Sequence record: OP953026.1
Length of the DNA stretch: 64,000 nucleotides
Direction: 5' to 3' (one strand)
Below the pieces are notes generated by a model. That model was not told the origin of the DNA. It was given only the letters and a program-made list of their open reading frames with translations, and ran no database searches. Shown piece by piece: positions 2,301 through 61,047 of the stretch (within the stretch, counting starts at the first letter, position 1; each line of letters opens with the position of its first letter). Position numbers and translations under genes: made by a program.

Positions 2301-3579
2301 GGTTAAACCCATGTCTCATGTTAAAGAAGTAGATGTCGAAGAGGAAAAACTTTTCTTTGATGAGAACCAACCAGAGATGGTTGAAGGCGAAGAAGAGACT
2401 GTTTCAAGTGCCTCGGCTCCTGAAATTTTAGCTAAGATGTGTGTAGCTGTCGAAGCGATTCATCAGCTATCTGATATTTATGCAATCACTAAACTTGAAG
2501 GCGTATCAAAACCAGATGTTGATGGTATTCGAGCATTAGTTAAGCGCATGAGCACTGAAGGGTTTGAAGCTCCTAAGAAAGCAGTAGCTTCACTTGAGCA
2601 ATATGCTTCTATGTTTACACCAACCCGTAGTACTCTTAATGTGACTATTTCTCAAGAGGCAGTGATGGCTACCATCATTAATACTCTTAAGACTTGGTTT
2701 GAGAAACTAATGGAACTATTTGCTAAGCTGATGCGTTGGATTAGTGATTTTAAGAAGCGTGATGTTGTTGTAGCAACTCGTTATGGAAAGATTGTCCGGG
2801 CAGTTGATCAAGCACGTACTCTCTTTCAAGAGTTACTAGTTAAAAATCGATTAGGTAATCGAAAGGATGCATTACTAGAAAAGTTTGATGCAATTGCACA
2901 ATCAATCATTGATGATCCTAAAATCCTAGCTAGTCGTGTATATGCTGCTGCATTTGGTAGTGTATACTACCAGAAAGAAATCATTAATATTAATAATGAA
3001 GCACGTACTGAACTAGGTACAATGGAAAAGCTAGTTGGCACTATCATTGAATATGTTAATTACAATGGTGATGATTATCGTGCACTTATGCCTATTGTCA
3101 ACATCCGTGAGATTGGTAAACTAGCTACCCGGTGCAATGAACTATCTACAGTATATCCTGATCGTTCAAGCATTCCAGATTTCCCCGATAAGAATTTCTG
3201 GAAAAACTCACATCTATTAAAAGATCGTTTTGTCGCACCACTTGATGATTTGTTAAAAGCATATCGCAATAGTAGTGATGCTTTACGTAAATTAAAGCAA
3301 CTATCACGTAACTATAGTCAAGAAACTATTGATGCTATTGGTGAGTCTGTTCAATTAATTAATACCTCCCTTGAAGGTATGCGTCGTATTACTGATACGA
3401 TGTTTGAATATTCTCAAGCACAATATCTAGCAGCTAGCTGCGTACTTAACTATTATGGTAAGTGTGCACAAGTAGTTAGTGAAGATTATAAGATCCATGG
3501 CTTCAATGATGCTATTCGCGAATGGCAGCGTCGATTTGATAAAGTCATTGATGACTTTAAACGTGGTTATGCAATGTAA
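2293..3579 (+). CDS. Internal head protein (gp86-like), prohead-protease substrate
   Basis: ATG at 2293 overlaps the upstream stop; acidic propeptide with AVE/STE/SLE/SQE motifs then an amphipathic helix (ISQEAVMATIINTLKTWFEKL), as in the gp92-97 paralogs. Confidence 0.75.
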   Translation: MSEVKPMSHVKEVDVEEEKLFFDENQPEMVEGEEETVSSASAPEILAKMCVAVEAIHQLSDIYAITKLEGVSKPDVDGIRALVKRMSTEGFEAPKKAVASLEQYASMFTPTRSTLNVTISQEAVMATIINTLKTWFEKLMELFAKLMRWISDFKKRDVVVATRYGKIVRAVDQARTLFQELLVKNRLGNRKDALLEKFDAIAQSIIDDPKILASRVYAAAFGSVYYQKEIININNEARTELGTMEKLVGTIIEYVNYNGDDYRALMPIVNIREIGKLATRCNELSTVYPDRSSIPDFPDKNFWKNSHLLKDRFVAPLDDLLKAYRNSSDALRKLKQLSRNYSQETIDAIGESVQLINTSLEGMRRITDTMFEYSQAQYLAASCVLNYYGKCAQVVSEDYKIHGFNDAIREWQRRFDKVIDDFKRGYAM

Positions 3580-3586
3580 AATACAA

Positions 3587-3617
3587 CATAATGCCCTCCC
3601 CTAGGGGAGGGCTTATG
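3587..3617. terminator. Bidirectional intrinsic terminator at a convergent junction
   Basis: CATAAT-GCCCTCCC-CTAG-GGGAGGGC-TTATG between two convergent stop codons. Confidence 0.85.
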
Positions 3618-20032: not shown

Positions 20033-23088
<3,056 letters not shown>

Positions 23089-23092
23089 TACC

Positions 23093-25070
<1,978 letters not shown>

Positions 25071-25082
25071 TTTAGGTGTATT

Positions 25083-25505
25083 ATGGAACAACTATTTATA
25101 CGAGTTGATGTGAGGTGGTCACAACAATTCTTTTCTGAATTAAAACAATACTTTAATTATACCGCAAAAGATGAAGATGATCTTAACTACTTGATCATTC
25201 TTTATATTAAAGAACGACATAATTTCTTTTGGACATGTGTTCCAGATAGATACAATGATGTAATGTGTAGTTTCTATAAATCAATTTGTGGTTATCCAAT
25301 AAATCCTAATATCATTGCAAATAGATTTGATCAACTCTATCGTGAGATTATGAATAGCTTATTACAAATAAAAGGTATTATCAAAGATATAGTTGCTGTT
25401 AAAACAAAAGAAGGGGATATCGAGGGATTCATTATACATTCTGAATCACTACCTAGGTCCTATCCAAGACCTACTAATTGGAAAGGTGTATTTGAAAGAT
25501 CTTAA
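25083..25505 (+). CDS. Hypothetical protein (gp102-like)
   Basis: AGGTG RBS before ATG 25083 (ORF track starts at 25059). Confidence 0.6.
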   Translation: MEQLFIRVDVRWSQQFFSELKQYFNYTAKDEDDLNYLIILYIKERHNFFWTCVPDRYNDVMCSFYKSICGYPINPNIIANRFDQLYREIMNSLLQIKGIIKDIVAVKTKEGDIEGFIIHSESLPRSYPRPTNWKGVFERS

Positions 25506-25518
25506 ACAGTATATTACA
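25502..25518 (+). promoter_or_regulatory. phiKZ-type early (virion RNAP) promoter
   Basis: TTAAACAGTATATTACA containing the TATATTAC early consensus; an identical 17-mer occurs at 26690. Confidence 0.8.
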
Positions 25519-25544
25519 CATATGAACTAATGTGGAGTATATAC

Positions 25545-25670
25545 ATGGAAAACATCCCTTTAAATAAACCTAAACAACCGGTAGTACCTGAAACATGGAT
25601 AAAACTTCATCATGTGGTCGTGTTATTCATTCTCTCACTAATAGGAACTTTAATCTTCAATGGTATTTAG
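25545..25670 (+). CDS. Small membrane protein, 41 aa (not in ORF track)
   Basis: GGAG RBS; MENIPLNKPKQPVVPETWIKLHHVVVLFILSLIGTLIFNGI; single hydrophobic segment; first ORF after the early promoter. Confidence 0.6.
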   Translation: MENIPLNKPKQPVVPETWIKLHHVVVLFILSLIGTLIFNGI

Positions 25671-25678
25671 GAGGACAT

Positions 25679-26071
25679 ATGTCATTTATAATTGCTATAT
25701 GTCTAGCAGTAATGGTAATAGGTATTTTTACTATTGGATCTAAAGTTAGAGCTTTATGGTATCTTATAAATGGTAAAACTTTAAATGAGCATAAGAAATG
25801 GCGCGCAGACTTCAATGAAGTAATTCAATGGCTTCATGAAGGTGCTTTCTTTACTAAATCAGGTTTATTTAAAGATCAAGCTATCTCGATTAGATTGTGT
25901 GAGCTATCGCGCAGTAAGAAATTATTCCCAATGCTACGGCGTTCTAAGTTCGAAGTTATAACTGCTAAGGTATTTAGGGAAATAACTGGTGAGCCTTCAG
26001 AGTATAATTATTACTTGAAATTTAATAAGGCTTATATTGGCTTCTACAACGCTAATCCAGAAATCCAATAA
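25679..26071 (+). CDS. N-terminally anchored membrane protein
   Basis: GGAGG RBS before ATG 25679; MSFIIAICLAVMVIGIFTIG hydrophobic N-terminus. Confidence 0.65.
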   Translation: MSFIIAICLAVMVIGIFTIGSKVRALWYLINGKTLNEHKKWRADFNEVIQWLHEGAFFTKSGLFKDQAISIRLCELSRSKKLFPMLRRSKFEVITAKVFREITGEPSEYNYYLKFNKAYIGFYNANPEIQ

Positions 26072-26151
26072 GCCTGGAAATGCACCCAATCTAATGAGAA
26101 GGTCTATGTTTTGATCTTCTCATTAGTACTCTTGTAGAAGGAGCCATTATC

Positions 26152-26640
26152 ATGGCTGAATTTATTATAGGTAAAGATATATTCAATGTACCTGGTGATC
26201 TTTATCTAATCACTGTTAATGTTGTTGGCGTCATGGGCGCTGGTTTAGCCAAATCGTTTAAAGAAAAGTATCCTGAACTTTTTGAAAGATACAAACACGA
26301 TTGCAAAAAGAGAATTATTACTATTGGTAATCCGGTTATTTACAAAGCATCCGATGGTAAACGTTTCATGATGTTTCCTACTAAGGATAACTGGCGGAAC
26401 CCATCTCAAATTAGTTTCATTGAACGTGGTCTAGAGTGGATGATGGAGAACGTATCGGATTCTGCGGAAAATGAAGAAGACTGTATTCATCCAGATTGGA
26501 AAATTATCATACCACCTCTAGGGTGTGCTAATGGTGGATTAGATTTCTCTGATGTTAGAACTATCATTGAAGATTGGTCTAATCACATGCCTAACCAGAT
26601 TGTGGTTGTTTATCCACCGTGGATAGATTCATCGGTTTAA
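26152..26640 (+). CDS. DarG/TARG1-class macrodomain (ADP-ribosyl glycohydrolase)
   Basis: Motifs TVNVVGVMGAGLAKSFKEKYP, FPTKDNWRNPS, IERGL and IPPLGCANGGL match DarG-type macrodomains, including the catalytic Lys of FPTK. Confidence 0.85.
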   Translation: MAEFIIGKDIFNVPGDLYLITVNVVGVMGAGLAKSFKEKYPELFERYKHDCKKRIITIGNPVIYKASDGKRFMMFPTKDNWRNPSQISFIERGLEWMMENVSDSAENEEDCIHPDWKIIIPPLGCANGGLDFSDVRTIIEDWSNHMPNQIVVVYPPWIDSSV

Positions 26641-26645
26641 CATTG

Positions 26646-26671
26646 GCCTTCCCTCAGGGGAAGGCTTTATG
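26646..26671 (+). terminator. Intrinsic terminator
   Basis: GCCTTCCC-TCAG-GGGAAGGC-TTTATG. Confidence 0.8.
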
Positions 26672-26689
26672 TCGTATATTCAAACCATT

Positions 26690-26706
26690 TTAAACAGTAT
26701 ATTACA
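26690..26706 (+). promoter_or_regulatory. phiKZ-type early promoter
   Basis: TTAAACAGTATATTACA, identical to 25502-25518, just downstream of a terminator. Confidence 0.8.
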
Positions 26707-26763
26707 TTTGTGACAATACTGTAAACATTATCATACAACTTAATGTAAATAGGTGGAAATAAA

Positions 26764-27210
26764 ATGGCAAAGACTAAAAAGCAAAAAGTGCAAGAGGCGA
26801 TTACTCGTAAATTGATCAAGTTCTATAGTGATACATTTCCGGAGTTGATGAAAGCTATTGAAAACTGTGATAGCAGTGGCGAAGAGCATAACCTCCACAA
26901 TGTATTTGATAATTATAAGAAAACCATTAAAATGGCAGAAGAAGCCAAGGTTGACCTTAGTCTTTATGGAGTAAATTTAATTGACAAGGATACATACACG
27001 AGTCTTTTGTGGTTTATCGAAGGTTGCTATGTATGGGACATGATTAAAAAACTTAACAAAGCAAAATATGACAATGTTCCTGAACTGGCCAGAATCACAC
27101 AATGGGATGAACTGGATGACGCAAAGAAACTTCAATTCAATAAAAGTCGAGATTACATCATCAAACGACTGAAAGAAGTAACGACTTGTGAACATTTCAG
27201 AAACTATTAA
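26764..27210 (+). CDS. Early hypothetical protein
   Basis: 148 aa; AGGTGG RBS; first gene after an early promoter. Confidence 0.7.
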   Translation: MAKTKKQKVQEAITRKLIKFYSDTFPELMKAIENCDSSGEEHNLHNVFDNYKKTIKMAEEAKVDLSLYGVNLIDKDTYTSLLWFIEGCYVWDMIKKLNKAKYDNVPELARITQWDELDDAKKLQFNKSRDYIIKRLKEVTTCEHFRNY

Positions 27211-27244
27211 ATAGTTTTAATATTAGTAAATAGGAATATTTATT

Positions 27245-27583
27245 ATGAAATTCAATACGATTGCAAAAGGTGTATCTTTTCTTCTGGCCACTGCATCACT
27301 GGCTGGAACTGGGTATGTTATCTACAAGAAGGCTAAAGAGACTAAAGCCAACTTTGACAAACTCATGGGTTTCAGGGATCAGTTTAAAAGTATTTCAAAA
27401 GAGTATGGTGAATCAGATGAGTTCATGATGTTCGTCAATGCTGCAATGACTGAGACAATGGATAGTGCTGTTGCTGAGAGCAATATTGAAAAACATCGAC
27501 TGGATGTAATTCGTAATAAGCTGTCGATCATTTATGGCGATGACTATACGAATCAAGTATTCGATACAGTTCGTAAGATGTAA
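27245..27583 (+). CDS. N-anchored membrane protein
   Basis: 112 aa; hydrophobic residues 6-27 then a basic stop-transfer KKAK. Confidence 0.7.
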   Translation: MKFNTIAKGVSFLLATASLAGTGYVIYKKAKETKANFDKLMGFRDQFKSISKEYGESDEFMMFVNAAMTETMDSAVAESNIEKHRLDVIRNKLSIIYGDDYTNQVFDTVRKM

Positions 27584-27592
27584 AAATGGATA

Positions 27593-27609
27593 GGGCCTCA
27601 CTGAGGCCC
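27593..27609 (+). terminator. Probable terminator hairpin
   Basis: GGGCCTC-ACT-GAGGCCC; weak U tract. Confidence 0.5.
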
Positions 27610-27691
27610 CATTCAAATATAATTACGATAATAAAATTATATTTGAATGAGTTTGTTAAACCTTCAATTAATCGTAAAAAGGAAAATACAA

Positions 27692-27853
27692 ATGAATATT
27701 GATAAAGTTAAACTTCAAAAACTTATCGCGGATGTGCCCGAGGCACCTAAACATAAGAAGATTAAAAACGTCATCACCAAATATGCGGAGATAGCACTAG
27801 GAGTATATGTTGGTATTATAATAGCTAAACGTGTTCTAAATATCAAGTTTTAA
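27692..27853 (+). CDS. Small membrane protein, 53 aa
   Basis: AAGGA RBS before ATG 27692; C-terminal EIALGVYVGIIIAKR hydrophobic segment. Confidence 0.6.
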   Translation: MNIDKVKLQKLIADVPEAPKHKKIKNVITKYAEIALGVYVGIIIAKRVLNIKF

Positions 27854-27898
27854 TATAATCAAAATAAATCTACATTCATTAACTAATAGGATATTATC

Positions 27899-28216
27899 AT
27901 GCTTTCCATTATCGGTAATGTTGTAAAAACTGGTCTCATGCTGGCTGGTACCATCTATGTGTTCGAAGTCAGTGTGACTGTTTATAATGAGATTAAATTA
28001 GAAAAGAATATCCGTGAAAAAGTAAAGGACTATTCCGATTATATCAAATCTAATTCAGATAATACCACCGTGGAAGTAATGACGGACTTTATTGAAGTAG
28101 AGCTTATATACGTTATTAATGATGGATTGGATATGTTTAACACCATCAGTGATAAACATCGAATTAAATCAAAAATCCGTAACTGGATTAAGGATGCAAT
28201 TAACAATGAACTCTAA
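27899..28216 (+). CDS. N-anchored membrane protein
   Basis: 105 aa; hydrophobic N-terminus. Confidence 0.65.
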   Translation: MLSIIGNVVKTGLMLAGTIYVFEVSVTVYNEIKLEKNIREKVKDYSDYIKSNSDNTTVEVMTDFIEVELIYVINDGLDMFNTISDKHRIKSKIRNWIKDAINNEL

Positions 28217-28646
28217 GCTATCTCTTACATTAGGGATGGTAAGTGGAGCCGTACTCGGTAAGCTTGCTTGGGATTCTAGAGAAAAACTCTATGAATTCTA
28301 TTATGGACGAATTATTATCCATAAACTGAAAGCTTATCAAAAGACCATGGATGTCGATAAACTACCGTTCCATCCAGCAACAGCAATGGCCCATTATCTT
28401 AAGGCTAGCATTAATGCATCCAAGGAGACACTTGTGTCACTGGATCTTCTTGAGAGCATTAATGAAGTAGGGCTTAAATATATTGAATCAGTGCGATGCC
28501 GTTATGATACTGCATGGCAAATGAGTCTGCACAGGAGGCTTGTCAAACGGCAGAAAGAGATTGAAGAAGAGAATCGTCGTATCGAAGAAGAAGAACGACG
28601 TAATCGGAAACAACTTGATCTGTTCGATGATGTGTCAGATGTGTAA
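28206..28646 (+). CDS. N-anchored protein with a charged coiled-coil C-terminus
   Basis: AAGGA RBS before ATG 28206 (ORF track starts at 28119); LSLTLGMVSGAVLG; E/R-rich tail. Confidence 0.65.
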   Translation: MNSKLSLTLGMVSGAVLGKLAWDSREKLYEFYYGRIIIHKLKAYQKTMDVDKLPFHPATAMAHYLKASINASKETLVSLDLLESINEVGLKYIESVRCRYDTAWQMSLHRRLVKRQKEIEEENRRIEEEERRNRKQLDLFDDVSDV

Positions 28647-28654
28647 CTGATAAT

Positions 28655-28677
28655 GGGAGTCTTCGGACTCCCTTTTA
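28655..28677 (+). terminator. Intrinsic terminator
   Basis: GGGAGTC-TTCG-GACTCCC-TTTT. Confidence 0.85.
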
Positions 28678-28733
28678 TTTTCTACATCGTATTATTTTTT
28701 AATCACTTCAATAAACGTAAATAGGTATACAAA

Positions 28734-29090
28734 ATGAATATTGATAAAGTATCACTCTGTCTTGGTATTTTTGTTGGTTCAGTTACAATGTGTGCAGTTG
28801 GTAAAATCTATCATAAAACTGTTATTGATGTAAAAATCAATAAGTTGCGTAATGCTGCTTCAGTGTCTAATGAAATTCTTACAATGCTTTCTAAGCGTGC
28901 CTCTGTTATTCGCGCTGAGGTTATGCCAACCGCAGAAGACTTTATCGATTGTGAAGGTAAAGTACACAACAAACTCACTGAAGAGTTACAGGACATCGTC
29001 GCTGGTTTTAAAGTAGCGCCTGAACACGGGGCTAGTGTTAATACACGTATTAATGATTGGTTCCTACAAACGTTCCCAACTGTTTACTAA
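28734..29090 (+). CDS. N-anchored membrane protein
   Basis: 118 aa; VSLCLGIFVGSVTMCAVG hydrophobic segment. Confidence 0.7.
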   Translation: MNIDKVSLCLGIFVGSVTMCAVGKIYHKTVIDVKINKLRNAASVSNEILTMLSKRASVIRAEVMPTAEDFIDCEGKVHNKLTEELQDIVAGFKVAPEHGASVNTRINDWFLQTFPTVY

Positions 29091-29100
29091 TAGGTGATAT

Positions 29101-29523
29101 ATGTCAAAAGTAGTATTTCCTAATGGTCTACTAATAGCGCTCATGCAAAACTTCGATCACACTCTCGAATGTTTTGATCATGATGTTAGTGTTTTTAAAA
29201 AGGCACTCAGTGACCTAGATAATAAAATTAAAGGTGGTATTAAGTCACTTGATAATGATTACTCTAATGCTAAAATTGCATTAGAACGCATTCTTGAAGA
29301 ACTTTTTAAAAGAGGATTACATATCCCTGGGCCTTCTGGAAAAGCATTTGTCATTGAAAAAGTTCACATTGTAGATAGCACAGGTGTGGCTAAGGCATAC
29401 CGTGTCAGTTACAATGATGAAAAAGCTATGCCTGAATATGTATCAGCCGATAATGTATGGGGTGCACTAATTTCATATCAAAAACGTAGTCGTAGTGCAA
29501 ATCCATTCAAACCAACTGCGTGA
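29101..29523 (+). CDS. Hypothetical protein
   Basis: 140 aa; AGGTG RBS. Confidence 0.65.
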   Translation: MSKVVFPNGLLIALMQNFDHTLECFDHDVSVFKKALSDLDNKIKGGIKSLDNDYSNAKIALERILEELFKRGLHIPGPSGKAFVIEKVHIVDSTGVAKAYRVSYNDEKAMPEYVSADNVWGALISYQKRSRSANPFKPTA

Positions 29524-29594
29524 AAAGGATCTGATGGTTAAAGCCATAATCCATTATCGTATTACATAATACCTGCAAAAGAAGGAATAAGTCA

Positions 29595-29846
29595 ATGAGC
29601 GAATCTAAAGAAGTTATCAACATGGTGGAATGTTTTATCAGTGAATCTTACATGGAGCCAGGTGTTGACCACAATCGTCGGATTTTGATGCGTGAATACG
29701 GGATCAACCCTAACAGCGGTATACCACTTCGGGGGAACTGGGTTCTGCGTAACATGCTCACTGGGGAATTTATCGACAATGATAAATACCTCAACGATAT
29801 TGTTGAACGTAATTCCATCCAATTCGAACGCAATACCTTCGTCTAG
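29595..29846 (+). CDS. Small early protein, REYGINP family copy 1
   Basis: 83 aa; GAAGGA RBS; paralogous to 30840-31115. Confidence 0.7.
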   Translation: MSESKEVINMVECFISESYMEPGVDHNRRILMREYGINPNSGIPLRGNWVLRNMLTGEFIDNDKYLNDIVERNSIQFERNTFV

Positions 29847-29881
29847 CTATAATTAATCCAAATCTGAAAATAGGTCAAACC

Positions 29882-30265
29882 ATGAACGAACACATTCAAA
29901 AGAAAATCAACCAGGGTACTGGCAGACTGGCTATGTGCAACTTCGACAAAATGAACTATGTTCAGGGTCGTGAGTACTATGCCATCTCAGATAGTGGTTT
30001 ACTTGAACAAATCGTTGCTCTATGCGCAGTTCAGTGGCCTCAGGAAATGGCCAACTACCTGCATGATGAAAGCGCTCTGTTCTGGGCTCTTTTCGACCGT
30101 GGTATCGTAGCTGATGGTAAACCTCGCGCCGACCGTAAAGACTTCATCTACGAACGCCTTGGTTTCATCCACAAGAAGAAGTTCAAAAAATACGGCTTGT
30201 CTATTCTACAGCGTGCGCGCACCCGCTCGATGGCTAGTTTTGAGAAAGCTCAAGAGACTTGCTGA
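29882..30265 (+). CDS. Hypothetical protein
   Basis: 127 aa; basic C-terminus; codon choice like highly expressed genes. Confidence 0.7.
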   Translation: MNEHIQKKINQGTGRLAMCNFDKMNYVQGREYYAISDSGLLEQIVALCAVQWPQEMANYLHDESALFWALFDRGIVADGKPRADRKDFIYERLGFIHKKKFKKYGLSILQRARTRSMASFEKAQETC

Positions 30266-32843: not shown

Positions 32844-32870
32844 CATAAGCCCTCTCCTTCGGGAGAGGGC
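32844..32870 (+). terminator. Intrinsic terminator
   Basis: CATAA-GCCCTCTCC-TTCG-GGAGAGGGC. Confidence 0.8.
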
Positions 32871-36297: not shown

Positions 36298-36831
36298 ATG
36301 ACCCAAGTTCTGGTTATGCCAAAAGCTGTTTTTGAATCATATAAAACAGCAGGTGTACAATTTAACAAATTGTTAGACACCAACTATATAGTTTCCGAAA
36401 CCTCCGTAAATGATCTTGCGGAGATACATCAGGCTTTAACTGCTTTCCCCTTTCTATTACCAGAAAAACTAGATATTAAGTTAGCAGTAAGCCCGATAAT
36501 CAAAGTTGCTGAGTTAGGTGAAATAGACGGTCCTGAACAATTTAAGATGAAGGATTTACACAATCGTTTAGAGAGCCGTCTAGCGACTAATGAACTTAGG
36601 GATGCAGGTAACCGTAATTTAGTGTACGATTATTACCTATATCCTGTAGATGAGAATCTGTGGGTTGCGGTGCAGCAGAGTGCGCACATTGCAAGTAGCG
36701 ATCCTAGACGTGTCTCAATTCAACTTAACCATACTTTCTTTGATAGTATGATAAATGAAATGTTGAACACCCGCCCACGTGAATCCGTGGCGTCAACACA
36801 AATTTTTACCTATTATTTGGAGAGCTGCTAG
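36298..36831 (+). CDS. Minor capsid/head protein (gp119-like)
   Basis: 177 aa immediately upstream of the major capsid gene. Confidence 0.7.
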   Translation: MTQVLVMPKAVFESYKTAGVQFNKLLDTNYIVSETSVNDLAEIHQALTAFPFLLPEKLDIKLAVSPIIKVAELGEIDGPEQFKMKDLHNRLESRLATNELRDAGNRNLVYDYYLYPVDENLWVAVQQSAHIASSDPRRVSIQLNHTFFDSMINEMLNTRPRESVASTQIFTYYLESC

Positions 36832-36903
36832 GTTGATTCCGGAAAAGATGCTTAGTAGACCCAAATTTTTAAACCAAAAACTCATCCTACGTAGGAATAA
36901 AAA

Positions 36904-39147
36904 ATGAGCGTACATGCCCTAAGAGAACTGTTTAAACACAAAGGCGAAAAGAATTACGAAGTCTTCTCAATGGAAGATTTCATTGGCCGCCTAGAAAGTG
37001 AAATTGGTCTAAATGACAGCGTTGTTAGTCAAGGTCGTTCCCTTATTAGCAGCATTTCACATGAAAACTTCGGTACCGTGCAAGCTACCGACATTCAAGA
37101 TGCCGCTGCAATTTATAACAAAATGCAAATGCTCGTTAACGACTATGGTTTCGAACGAGTAAGTTCCAGTGATCCTCAAGTACGTGCTCGTGAAGAACGT
37201 GTCCGTGAGAACCAAATCACTGCTGCTACCATGGCTGCTATCGCCTGTGCTGATGAAACTAAATATATCCGTGCACTACGTGGTATTACCAAAGCTAAAG
37301 CTTCTAATGAAGATCATGTTAAGGTTGTACAGCATCAGTTCAATGGCCCTGCTGGTGGCATTCAAGTATTCGAAAATGGTGTTGGCCTAGAGAACTATAA
37401 CGAGAAGTCACAGCGTGATTTCCGTGTTGTAACTATTGGTTATAACCTAGCTGCTAGCCGTCAGGATGAATTCGCTGAGCGTATCTATCCGACCACCGTT
37501 ATCAACCCGATTGAAGGTGGTGTTGTTCAGGTTCTTCCTTACATCGCTGTAATGAAAGACGTTTACCACGAAGTATCCGGCGTTAAGATGGATAACGAAG
37601 AAGTGAACATGGTAGAAGCCTATCGTGATCCTTCCATCCTCGACGACGAAAGCATTGCACTAATTCCTGCCCTAGATCCGGCTGGTTCCAATGCTGACTT
37701 CTTCGTAGACCCGGCTCTTGTTCCTCCGTACACCATCAAGAACGAGCAGAACCTAACTATCACTACTGCTCCGCTAAAAGCGAACGTACGTCTTGATCTA
37801 ATGGGTAACTCCAATGCTAACCTACTCATTCAGCGTGGCATGCTTGAAGTTTCTGACACCATTGATCCGGCTGGTCGTCTAAAGAACCTATTCGTTCTAC
37901 TCGGCGGTAAAGTTGTTAAGTTCAAGGTTGACCGTCTACCTCGCGCTGTGTTCCAGCCCGATCTAGTTGGTGATACCCGGAACGCAGTTATCCGTTTCGA
38001 TAGCGATGACCTTGTTGTTAGTGGCGATACCACTTTCATCGACGGTTCAGCTGATGGCGTTATTAACGACCTTAAGACTGCTAAACTAAGCCTACGTCTA
38101 AGCGTTGGTTTTGGTGGTACTATCAGCCTATCCAAAGGCGATTCTAAGTTTGGTGCTACCGACACTTACGTCGATAAAGTTCTAAACGAAGATGGCCAGG
38201 TAATGGATAATGCTGACCCGGCTGTTAAAGCTATTCTAGATCAGCTAACTGACCTAGCTGTTATCGGTTTCGAACTAGATACTCGCTTCACCAACACTAA
38301 CCGTCGTCAGCGTGGTCACCTACTACAGACCCGTGCACTACAGTTCCGTCATCCGATCCCGATGCACGCTCCTGTAACTCTACCGATGGACACCATGACC
38401 GATGAAGGTCCGGGTGAGGTTGTTAAAGCTCTAACTGTTAACACCAACATCCGTAACAGCAACAACGCTGTTAAGCGCATGCTTAACTACCTTGCTCAAC
38501 TACGTGAAGTTGTACACAATGGTTACAACCGTCCGAAGTTTGGTATCATCGAAGGTGCACTATCCGCTGTAATGCGTCCGACCTATCGTTACAAAGAACT
38601 AGATCTTGAGAAAGTCATCGACACCATCAAGTCTAAAGATCGTTGGGACGACGTTTGCGCTGCGATCCTAAACTGTGTTAAAGCTGAGCTATTCCCGGCT
38701 CACCGTGATTCCAACATTGAAGCTGCCTTCCGTGTTATCTCCGGTAACCAGGATGAAACTCCGATGTATCTCTTCTGCTCCGACAAAGAGATTGCTAACT
38801 ATCTAATGACTAAAGGTGACGACCGTACTCTAGGTGCTTATCTCAAGTACGATATCGTTTCCACCAACAACCAGCTATTTGATGGTAAGCTAGTTGTAAT
38901 TCCGACCCGCGCAGTACAACAAGAAAACGACATCCTCTCCTGGGGCCAGTTCTTCTACGTATCTACTGTTATCGCTGACCTACCGATCACTCGTGGTGGT
39001 CACCAGGTTACTCGCGAAATCGCGGCCATTCCGTTCAACCTACACGTCAACAACATTCCGTTCGCGCTAGAGTTCAAGATCACTGGCTTCCAGAAAGTCA
39101 TGGGCGAAACTCAGTTCAACGGTAAGCTTGCTGATCTTAAGCCGTGA
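36904..39147 (+). CDS. Major capsid protein (gp120)
   Basis: 747 aa; strongly biased codon use; GLE|NY maturation-type site; length and N-terminus match phiKZ gp120 as recalled. Confidence 0.92.
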   Translation: MSVHALRELFKHKGEKNYEVFSMEDFIGRLESEIGLNDSVVSQGRSLISSISHENFGTVQATDIQDAAAIYNKMQMLVNDYGFERVSSSDPQVRAREERVRENQITAATMAAIACADETKYIRALRGITKAKASNEDHVKVVQHQFNGPAGGIQVFENGVGLENYNEKSQRDFRVVTIGYNLAASRQDEFAERIYPTTVINPIEGGVVQVLPYIAVMKDVYHEVSGVKMDNEEVNMVEAYRDPSILDDESIALIPALDPAGSNADFFVDPALVPPYTIKNEQNLTITTAPLKANVRLDLMGNSNANLLIQRGMLEVSDTIDPAGRLKNLFVLLGGKVVKFKVDRLPRAVFQPDLVGDTRNAVIRFDSDDLVVSGDTTFIDGSADGVINDLKTAKLSLRLSVGFGGTISLSKGDSKFGATDTYVDKVLNEDGQVMDNADPAVKAILDQLTDLAVIGFELDTRFTNTNRRQRGHLLQTRALQFRHPIPMHAPVTLPMDTMTDEGPGEVVKALTVNTNIRNSNNAVKRMLNYLAQLREVVHNGYNRPKFGIIEGALSAVMRPTYRYKELDLEKVIDTIKSKDRWDDVCAAILNCVKAELFPAHRDSNIEAAFRVISGNQDETPMYLFCSDKEIANYLMTKGDDRTLGAYLKYDIVSTNNQLFDGKLVVIPTRAVQQENDILSWGQFFYVSTVIADLPITRGGHQVTREIAAIPFNLHVNNIPFALEFKITGFQKVMGETQFNGKLADLKP

Positions 39148-39232: not shown

Positions 39233-39263
39233 CATAGGCCCTCCCTTCGGGGAGGGCTTTATG
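39233..39263 (+). terminator. Intrinsic terminator of the capsid operon
   Basis: CATAG-GCCCTCCC-TTCG-GGGAGGGC-TTTATG. Confidence 0.88.
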
Positions 39264-51696: not shown

Positions 51697-51728
51697 CATA
51701 ATGCCCTCCCGTAATGGGAGGGCTTATG
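51697..51728. terminator. Bidirectional terminator at a convergent junction
   Basis: CATAAT-GCCCTCCC-GTAAT-GGGAGGGC-TTATG. Confidence 0.85.
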
Positions 51729-60012: not shown

Positions 60013-60614
60013 TGAACAATCCGTTATCACTCCAAGAACTATCTTTAGCTACTGCACCTACTGAAGATAAAGTAAAAGTACTATTAATGTTTAACCGTAC
60101 ATCTGAGGTATTCCTACAAAGCGTGGGTTATCTACCTTTAGATGCATTTGATGCTAAGTCACGTGAGCACACTATTTTTGTTGAAGCAGAAATGGGTACT
60201 TATGATGTGGTCGTAAGTAATACACCTGGTAAACAACCTACACTTTCTGATTGGAAGATTGTTCCTAAAGAAGAAGCACCACAAGTGATTACTGAAGATC
60301 ACTTAAATAGTAAAGTAGCTTACAAAATTACTGAACGCTATCCAGTGACTGAGCAAATCAATATCCTTGCACGTGCAATTAAAAAGCTAGCTGAAAAATA
60401 TGGTCAAGAGTTAGATGAACTAGAAGAAATGCTTGATTATATTGATCTTGTTAAACGAACTAATCGTGCGCATAAGGAGGCCCTAATTGAGAGCCCAGAC
60501 GTTATCTATAAATCCAGGGAAGATCTCGACGCTGAGAAAGCACATCGATATGCAGGTGGCCTGCATGAGCTTATCGGCCCACGAAAGATCGACCAAGGAC
60601 GTGTTTTCAGCTGA
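60012..60614 (+). CDS. Hypothetical protein, possible tail-fibre assembly factor (gp136-like)
   Basis: TAATG-coupled to the last fibre gene. Confidence 0.6.
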   Translation: MNNPLSLQELSLATAPTEDKVKVLLMFNRTSEVFLQSVGYLPLDAFDAKSREHTIFVEAEMGTYDVVVSNTPGKQPTLSDWKIVPKEEAPQVITEDHLNSKVAYKITERYPVTEQINILARAIKKLAEKYGQELDELEEMLDYIDLVKRTNRAHKEALIESPDVIYKSREDLDAEKAHRYAGGLHELIGPRKIDQGRVFS

Positions 60615-61047
60615 ATTTGCAGCTGACCTTGTATCTTATCTGGATACACTGGAAGATTCCTGGTGGTTTAATCGGAAAAAAATTAATAGTATCCCAACCA
60701 AAGGTATCACTGAATGTGATTATTGGTTTTTAGGTCATAACCAAATGCCAGTAGAATTACGGGAATTACTATTTCATATTGCACCTAAGGTAGAAGGTGC
60801 TTGGTTAGGCGAAGTACTAATCAATCGATATGAAATTGGTACAGGTATGCCTGAGCACATCGACCAAGCTGTTTATCGTTACAACATGGTTATTGCATTA
60901 AATGACAATGGCGATGGTATAACGATCAATGGTGAGTTTTATCAGGATGTACCAGGTAGGGCTACTATTTTTCCAATCCGTTCAGAGCCACATGAGGTCC
61001 CTCCAGTTAAAAATAAAAGATACGTCCTTATATATCTCTACGAGTAG
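60565..61047 (+). CDS. 2OG-Fe(II) dioxygenase-like protein
   Basis: INRYEIGTGMPEHID (HxD), PHEV (distal His) and KRY (2OG-binding Arg); start at 60565 chosen for its AGGTGG RBS. Confidence 0.7.
   Translation: MSLSAHERSTKDVFSAEFAADLVSYLDTLEDSWWFNRKKINSIPTKGITECDYWFLGHNQMPVELRELLFHIAPKVEGAWLGEVLINRYEIGTGMPEHIDQAVYRYNMVIALNDNGDGITINGEFYQDVPGRATIFPIRSEPHEVPPVKNKRYVLIYLYE

Follow-up and report, generated by a model that had tools for sequence, protein, structure and literature searches.

A stand-alone DarG-like macrodomain gene in phiKZ-type jumbo phage DNA: gp104, the published AdfM, and its proposed transcription unit

The DNA analyzed, a stretch of 64,000 nucleotides from sequence record OP953026.1 (hereafter, the window), is phiKZ-type jumbo phage DNA. 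PA7, pPA-N1803-4At.2 and phiKZ are among the 47 genomes of phiKZ-type Pseudomonas aeruginosa jumbo phages which its interval 24000-29000 matches at 99.8-100% identity. The gene of interest is an intact ORF on the plus strand, which runs from an ATG start to a stop codon, contains neither internal stops nor frame problems, and features the sequence AAGGAG 8 nt 5' of the ATG. All the residues encoded are identical to those of phiKZ NP_803670.1 (162/162, 100%), the protein called PHIKZ104, "macro domain-containing protein", in the phiKZ RefSeq record, and the position of the gene is syntenic in phages 201phi2-1 and PS119XW. The gene product is phiKZ gp104, known from the literature under the name AdfM (anti-DarT factor macro). 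The gene and the elements surrounding it are listed in Table 1.

Table 1. Features of the gp104 region (window coordinates)
Feature	Position	Strand	Description
phiKZ-type intrinsic terminator	25048..25071	+	end of the gp101 (virion protein) unit; upstream boundary; fold -19 kcal/mol, z -4.25
Early-promoter-like 17-mer TTAAACAGTATATTACA	25502..25518	+	between gp102 and gp102.1
gp102.1	25545..25670	+	41 aa; first gene of the putative early unit; phiKZ annotation; without Pfam or PADLOC match
gp103	25679..26071	+	130 aa, putative protein; second gene of the putative early unit; phiKZ annotation; without family match
Perfect 14-bp hairpin	26091..26126	+	gp103-gp104 spacer; candidate site of the gp104 late-rise element
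gp104 / AdfM	26152..26640	+	162 aa; stand-alone macrodomain assigned to the DarG class; DNA ADP-ribosyl glycohydrolase
phiKZ-type terminator	26645..26676	+	directly 3' of gp104; 9-bp GC-rich stem, then TTTATGTCGT; motif match 26647-26670
17-mer TTAAACAGTATATTACA, second exact copy	26690..26706	+	between the gp104 terminator and gp105; probable promoter region of the gp105-gp116 early unit

The gp104 translation includes the stretches MMFPTKDNWRNPSQIS and IIPPLGCANGGL, and the motifs FPTKDNWRNPS and IPPLGCANGGL. The FPTK..WR..S and IPPLG..NGGL motifs, cited in a preliminary description of this DNA as part of a full DarG-type set, are therefore present. The Pfam Macro profile (PF01661) matches gp104 with 30.1 bits (gathering cut-off 22 bits), residues 21-138 corresponding to profile positions 3-117 of 118. 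Matches to the DarG profiles have E values of 4.4e-39 (PADLOC DarG) and 4.9e-40 (NCBIfam antitoxin_DarG, NF048014), and extend over positions 8-145 of 329 and 7-148 of 338 only. A phmmer search of PDB sequences with gp104 gave 5m3i (E 9e-25), 5m31/5m3e (E 3e-19) and 7omu (E 9e-18), the three significant matches being the DarG macrodomains of M. tuberculosis and T. aquaticus and a Thermosipho DarTG fusion. The Asn of the N-terminal strand (N23) and the Lys of the FPTK motif (K78) of gp104 align with their DarG counterparts in these matches, and correspond to N22 and K80 of the T. aquaticus protein according to PMC13309987.

Conservation was monitored in an alignment of 42 short homologues showing 33-69% identity. 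Residues N23, G29, G31, A33, Y47, C51, T77, K78, S85, P121, G124, G128, L130 and V135 are invariant, and so are the glycine-rich loops (42/42 homologues). The AlphaFold2 model of gp104 obtained from the same alignment has a pLDDT of 94.9 and a pTM of 0.90. When the model was compared to the PDB with Foldseek, ranks 1-4 were all occupied by DarG macrodomains (E 6e-16 to 7e-14, 29-34% identity), with TM values of 0.77-0.80 on the query length, and of 0.85 on the target length for three DarG macrodomain chains. TARG1 is the second-best class (E ~1e-8), followed by Poa1p and viral macrodomains. By profile matches and predicted fold, gp104 is a DarG-class (DarG/TARG1) macrodomain, and independent sequence and fold confirmation is thus added here to the enzyme class of AdfM.

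The DarG2 macrodomains of known structure (5M3I, 5M31/5M3E, 7OMU) and gp104 have a common fold and active site (31-34% identity, TM ~0.80-0.85), and catalyze the same reaction according to PMC13309987. Unlike DarG2 antitoxins, gp104 is a phage-encoded protein and undergoes import into a phage nucleus. Human TARG1 (C6orf130; 4J5Q/4J5S) and gp104 belong to the same subclass of macrodomains with a catalytic lysine; yet TARG1 is only 21% identical to gp104, is eukaryotic, and has wider known substrates.

The absence of a C-terminal DarG extension, noted in the preliminary description, was borne out. The C-terminal DarT-binding domain is missing in the 162-aa gp104, as matches to the DarG profiles end at positions 145/329 (PADLOC) and 148/338 (NCBIfam). 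Since only the N-terminal half of these profiles is matched, and the NF048014 score (137.8 bits) is under the equivalog cut-off of 250 bits, gp104 is, as judged from profile coverage, not a full-length DarG antitoxin. The same description had reported no DarT-like toxin nearby, and none was detected in the ten flanking proteins (gp100 to gp107.1), which have neither PADLOC nor significant Pfam matches, or in the other window ORFs of 140-310 aa, 16 in number. The protein encoded immediately downstream, gp105, matches neither DarG nor any other PADLOC profile, and members of RNA ligase or 2'-phosphotransferase families were not found among the neighbours of gp104. In DarTG2 operons DarT adjoins the antitoxin, whereas no DarT is adjacent to gp104 in the ORFs scanned.

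Two other sets of genes in the window may be mentioned. The interval 27245-29090 encodes a run of small early proteins (gp106, gp106.1, gp107, gp107.1, gp108) without Pfam or PADLOC matches. A hydrophobic segment resembling a membrane helix lies close to the N-terminal end of gp106, gp107 and gp108, and close to the C-terminal end of gp106.1, and the five proteins may form a paralogous family. An ORF of 186 aa with a TTG start (60487-61047, plus strand), overlapping the end of the preceding ORF, gave a weak match (E 1.2e-4) to the PADLOC '2OG' (2-oxoglutarate oxygenase-like) profile.

Terminators were searched for with the published phiKZ motif (PMC10914365), which has 8 matches in the window versus 0.01 expected. 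The match located at the end of gp104 corresponds to a stable RNA fold (-17.9 kcal/mol, z -3.85), and an equivalent terminator is found 3' of the gp104 homologues in 201phi2-1 and PS119XW. Additional matches reside at 3588-3616 and 51698-51727 (both strands), 32845-32868 (minus strand) and 39239-39262 (plus strand). The two sites matched on both strands are probably bidirectional terminators, being palindromic enough to be recognized in either direction and located between convergent genes.

The 17-mer is found in two exact copies in the window, both intergenic. In phiKZ numbering the first of them lies at 106,867-106,883. A related motif is located in 201phi2-1, 3' of the terminator following the gp104 homologue (at ~3040-3060 of the compared locus). 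Each copy coincides with a large step-up of RNA at 2 min after infection, and both are therefore probably early promoters, used by the virion RNA polymerase, a role suggested by the repetition of the sequence and by the RNA steps. The 8-mer TATATTAC, considered here as the consensus core of phiKZ early promoters, is by itself not enriched in the window (7 matches versus 6.6 expected). A scan for sigma-70 promoters of the interval 23000-30000 gave no signal, with 36 sites versus 31.6 expected. Transcription of phiKZ is independent of the host polymerase.

The spacer between gp103 and gp104 (26072-26151; 107,437-107,516 in phiKZ) can fold into a structured RNA (-26 kcal/mol, z -3.98), and none of 200 shuffled sequences folded as well. 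A hairpin is found at the same place in PS119XW (~2440-2480 of the compared locus) and 201phi2-1 (~2460-2490); its 5' arm is similar and partly conserved in PS119XW, and similar also in 201phi2-1. The hairpin was rejected as an internal terminator, because gp103 and gp104 RNAs are equal early. The loop of the hairpin contains the tetranucleotide TATG, which agrees with the late motif published for phiKZ, T(-3)ATG(+1), and would leave a leader of 44 nt. This candidate late promoter of gp104 was also discarded, as neither 201phi2-1 nor PS119XW has TATG at this position.

[quoted passage not shown] 3b, replicate 1), those at later times from the source data of PMC12571901 (Fig. 3b, control replicate 1), in which the file columns read 5-30 min and those times appear in the figure as 10-35 min after infection. 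Values for the genes of the region are reported in Table 2, where the times of the second data set are those of the figure.

Table 2. RNA levels of gp104 and of its neighbours at different times (min) after infection
Transcript	Data	2	10	15	20	25	35
gp102	PMC10914614	2.8	2.8				
gp102.1	PMC10914614	159	498				
gp103	PMC10914614	211	665				
gp104	PMC10914614	258	572				
gp105	PMC10914614	1332	4421				
gp103	PMC12571901, control		1546	2171	2562	2288	1485
gp104	PMC12571901, control		1020	2022	5313	6413	11396
gp104	PMC12571901, second control replicate		1370	1751	5669	7406	6753
gp105	PMC12571901, control		2242	1479	552	346	271
gp104	PMC12571901, chmA knock-down		1039	1177	785	615	572

In the early data set gp102 RNA is at background, varying from 1.2 to 2.8 throughout. 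At 2 min after infection the RNA level rises about 100-fold precisely where the first 17-mer is located, and about 5-fold further at the second, past the gp104 terminator, the level of gp105, an abundant early transcript according to PMC10914614, being about five times that of gp104. From the RNA steps found at both copies of the 17-mer we infer that gp102.1, gp103 and gp104 form a short early unit in which gp104 comes last, and which is distinct from the stronger early unit comprising gp105-gp116. The short unit would lie between two phiKZ-type terminators, and its early promoter would drive gp104 as early as about 2 min into the infection.

A different type of signal was observed in the same early data (PMC10914614) for gp119 and gp120 (36298-39147), late structural genes the latter of which encodes the major head protein. 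Their RNAs are flat from 2 min onwards: gp120 values in the 0-10 min table are about 383, 266, 276, 275 and 283, whereas true early genes climb. As the signal is flat and already there at 2 min, it looks like RNA brought in with virions or lysate rather than new transcription.

At later times the transcripts of the region diverge. From 10 to 35 min gp104 alone increases, 5- to 11-fold in the two control replicates, while its neighbours are flat or fall, and the late rise is lost upon knock-down of chimallin (PMC12571901 data). The accumulation of gp104 RNA is biphasic, an early start being followed by a late rise which is specific to gp104 and dependent on the phage nucleus. Because gp104 RNA rises late and gp103 RNA does not, the 80-nt spacer separating the two genes probably holds either a second promoter or an element selectively stabilizing the RNA. 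A second, gp104-specific and nucleus-dependent input would thus boost the gene later in infection. The preliminary description had placed gp104 in an early operon. This part stands, since gp104 RNA is found from 2 min along with those of gp102.1 and gp103, but is incomplete, as the subsequent 5- to 11-fold rise of gp104 was not accounted for. In PMC13309987 AdfM is called "late", on the basis of Ceyssens 2014. The protein described there is identical to the one of the window, and its gene has the same position in a phiKZ-type genome, yet the RNA tables show both an early phase and a late rise. The biphasic pattern reconciles the two labels, and is a new nuance on AdfM. The gp104 protein itself was found by mass spectrometry in low-molecular-weight gradient fractions from cells pooled at 10, 20 and 30 min.

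Function has been assigned to phiKZ gp104 by Morgan et al. (Cell Rep 2026; PMC13309987), who named the protein AdfM, anti-DarT factor macro. [quoted passage not shown] The homologues encoded by phiKZ, PhiPA3 and Erwinia phage Asesino localize to the phage nucleus. Phages devoid of AdfM plate normally on hosts lacking DarT homologues, but are restricted by DarTG2 systems: under restriction their DNA carries more ADP-ribose, about 4-fold less DNA is replicated, and capsids are unfilled or empty. The sensitivity of the phage is reported to be set by the nuclear concentrations of DarT2 and AdfM (PMC13309987). Import of gp104 into the nucleus is mediated by PicA (PMC11087766, PMC13309987), and the surface region of gp104 recognized for PicA import had been described earlier (PMC11087766). 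In a screen with antisense oligomers, the knock-down of ΦKZ104 reduced the accumulation of ChmA, without a plaque phenotype (PMC12571901).

These data outline a mechanism in which host DarT2 adds ADP-ribose to thymidines in single-stranded phage DNA, and AdfM, made in the cytoplasm and then taken up by the phage nucleus via PicA, hydrolyzes the marks, presumably in the nucleus, through the active site formed by the conserved N23 and K78. Upon removal of the marks DNA replication, and above all genome packaging, can go ahead. This account of the gene has a probability of about 0.95. The domain class and the residues come from the present analysis, the mechanism from the literature. The preliminary description had proposed that an orphan DarG-type hydrolase erases DarT2-dependent ADP-ribose from phage DNA, and its inference was correct. 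Because the protein of the window is the published AdfM itself, the finding was already known: function had been demonstrated in 2026 for the identical protein (PMC13309987), and is not novel. The same paper contains the experiments suggested as checks, namely rescue from DarT2 toxicity, which is full, in vitro removal of ADP-ribose from DNA and localization to the nucleus, both positive, and the challenge of a knockout phage with DarTG2 hosts, on which it is restricted.

The existence in other phages of orphan enzymes resembling antitoxins, also anticipated, is documented by AdfN, an orphan DarG1-like NADAR protein of T4-like phages (PMC11825919). AdfN and AdfM share the same strategy, the antitoxin half alone erasing ADP-ribose from phage DNA. 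They differ in the fold, NADAR in AdfN and macro in AdfM, and in the mark removed, which is the guanine ADP-ribose deposited by DarT1 in the case of AdfN, the thymine ADP-ribose deposited by DarT2 in the case of AdfM.

Homologues of gp104 were detected by tblastn (E<=1e-5) in 276 phage records. Many reside in chimalliviruses infecting Pseudomonas, Erwinia, Salmonella, Serratia and Klebsiella. Homologues were found also in phages which do not form a nucleus, such as phiEco32-type podophages, Thermus phage phiMa, T4-like phages of Proteus, Morganella and Providencia, and Vibrio, Streptomyces and Rhodococcus phages. The phiEco32-type proteins are about 41% identical to gp104, and closer to it than many chimallivirus homologues. 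The N-terminal half only of the PADLOC DarG profile is matched (E 3.5e-45) by phiEco32 gp37 (146 aa; 2974-3414 of the compared locus). The gp37 gene is located directly upstream of the gene for a phage ECF sigma factor. In Streptomyces phages Quantum, Frankenweenie and Kela, sequences homologous to gp104 (29-30% identity) lie within genes annotated as 'ADP-ribosyltransferase', a label denoting either a mis-annotated macrodomain or a transferase-hydrolase fusion. In the accessible part of PMC13309987 the survey of AdfM homologues is described for chimalliviruses only, and the occurrence of close DarG-like orphan macrodomains in phages without a nucleus is an addition of this analysis.

AdfM might play an additional role as a broader hydrolase, acting also on ADP-ribose attached to RNA or proteins, or on O-acetyl-ADP-ribose, and thereby countering further NAD-dependent defences. 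TARG1, which acts on several substrates, is the second-best fold class of the gp104 model (E ~1e-8); the gp104 transcript is found from 2 min, before the nucleus is formed; and homologues reside in many unrelated phages. A further hint is the mild phenotype, reduced ChmA accumulation, caused by the knock-down of the gene in a host without DarTG2 (PMC12571901). We regard such a role as unlikely, however, since the deletion phage plates normally on hosts without DarT homologues (PMC13309987), the nearest matches by sequence and fold are DarG proteins, not TARG1 or MacroD, and further substrates of AdfM are unreported in the literature.

Much less plausible is a function of gp104 in RNA repair or NAD metabolism, as an ADP-ribose-1''-phosphate phosphatase (Appr-1-p processing enzyme). 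PHROG 335 carries the label 'phosphatase', and homologues are named Appr-1-p processing enzyme or phosphatase in several GenBank records. Yet Poa1p ranks 12 or lower in the Foldseek comparison (E ~6e-8, 14% identity, versus 6e-16 and 34% for DarG), the NCBIfam model of ADP-ribose-binding proteins matches gp104 at E 0.05 only, the lysine typically used for catalysis by DarG and TARG1 is conserved in 42/42 homologues, no RNA ligase or 2'-phosphotransferase family is represented among the neighbours, and de-ADP-ribosylation of DNA has been demonstrated (PMC13309987). The PHROG label was accordingly rejected as the primary function of gp104, DarG being closer by both sequence and fold. A non-catalytic reader domain binding ADP-ribose, with which the macro fold alone would be compatible, can be dismissed, as the catalytic N and K residues are invariant in 42/42 homologues, and the enzymatic removal of ADP-ribose, impaired in the N23 mutant, refutes it (PMC13309987).

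The anti-DarT2 hydrolase AdfM has a bearing on how phages with a nucleus cope with host defences. The preliminary description had deemed the protein notable for a nucleus-forming phage; AdfM enters the nucleus and the deletion phage is sensitive to DarTG2 (PMC13309987). The shielding offered by the phage nucleus is leaky, and phages which form one still depend on a dedicated enzyme clearing ADP-ribose from their DNA, a point already made and tested for AdfM itself in the same paper. The reconciliation of the early and late labels bears on when the phage genome is exposed to DarT2. AdfM may be deployed in two waves. The early one, a product of the virion RNA polymerase preceding the nucleus, may shield the genome as it enters the cell, or may have other ADP-ribosylated targets; the later one, due to the gp104-specific input, may protect replication and packaging. 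DarG-like orphan macrodomains in phages without a nucleus may represent a means of countering DarT2 which is general, and not confined to phages that form a nucleus. Taken together, deployment of AdfM in two waves and the use of orphan macrodomains as a general anti-DarT2 device in phages without a nucleus are put forward as a tentative reading, somewhat short of an even chance.
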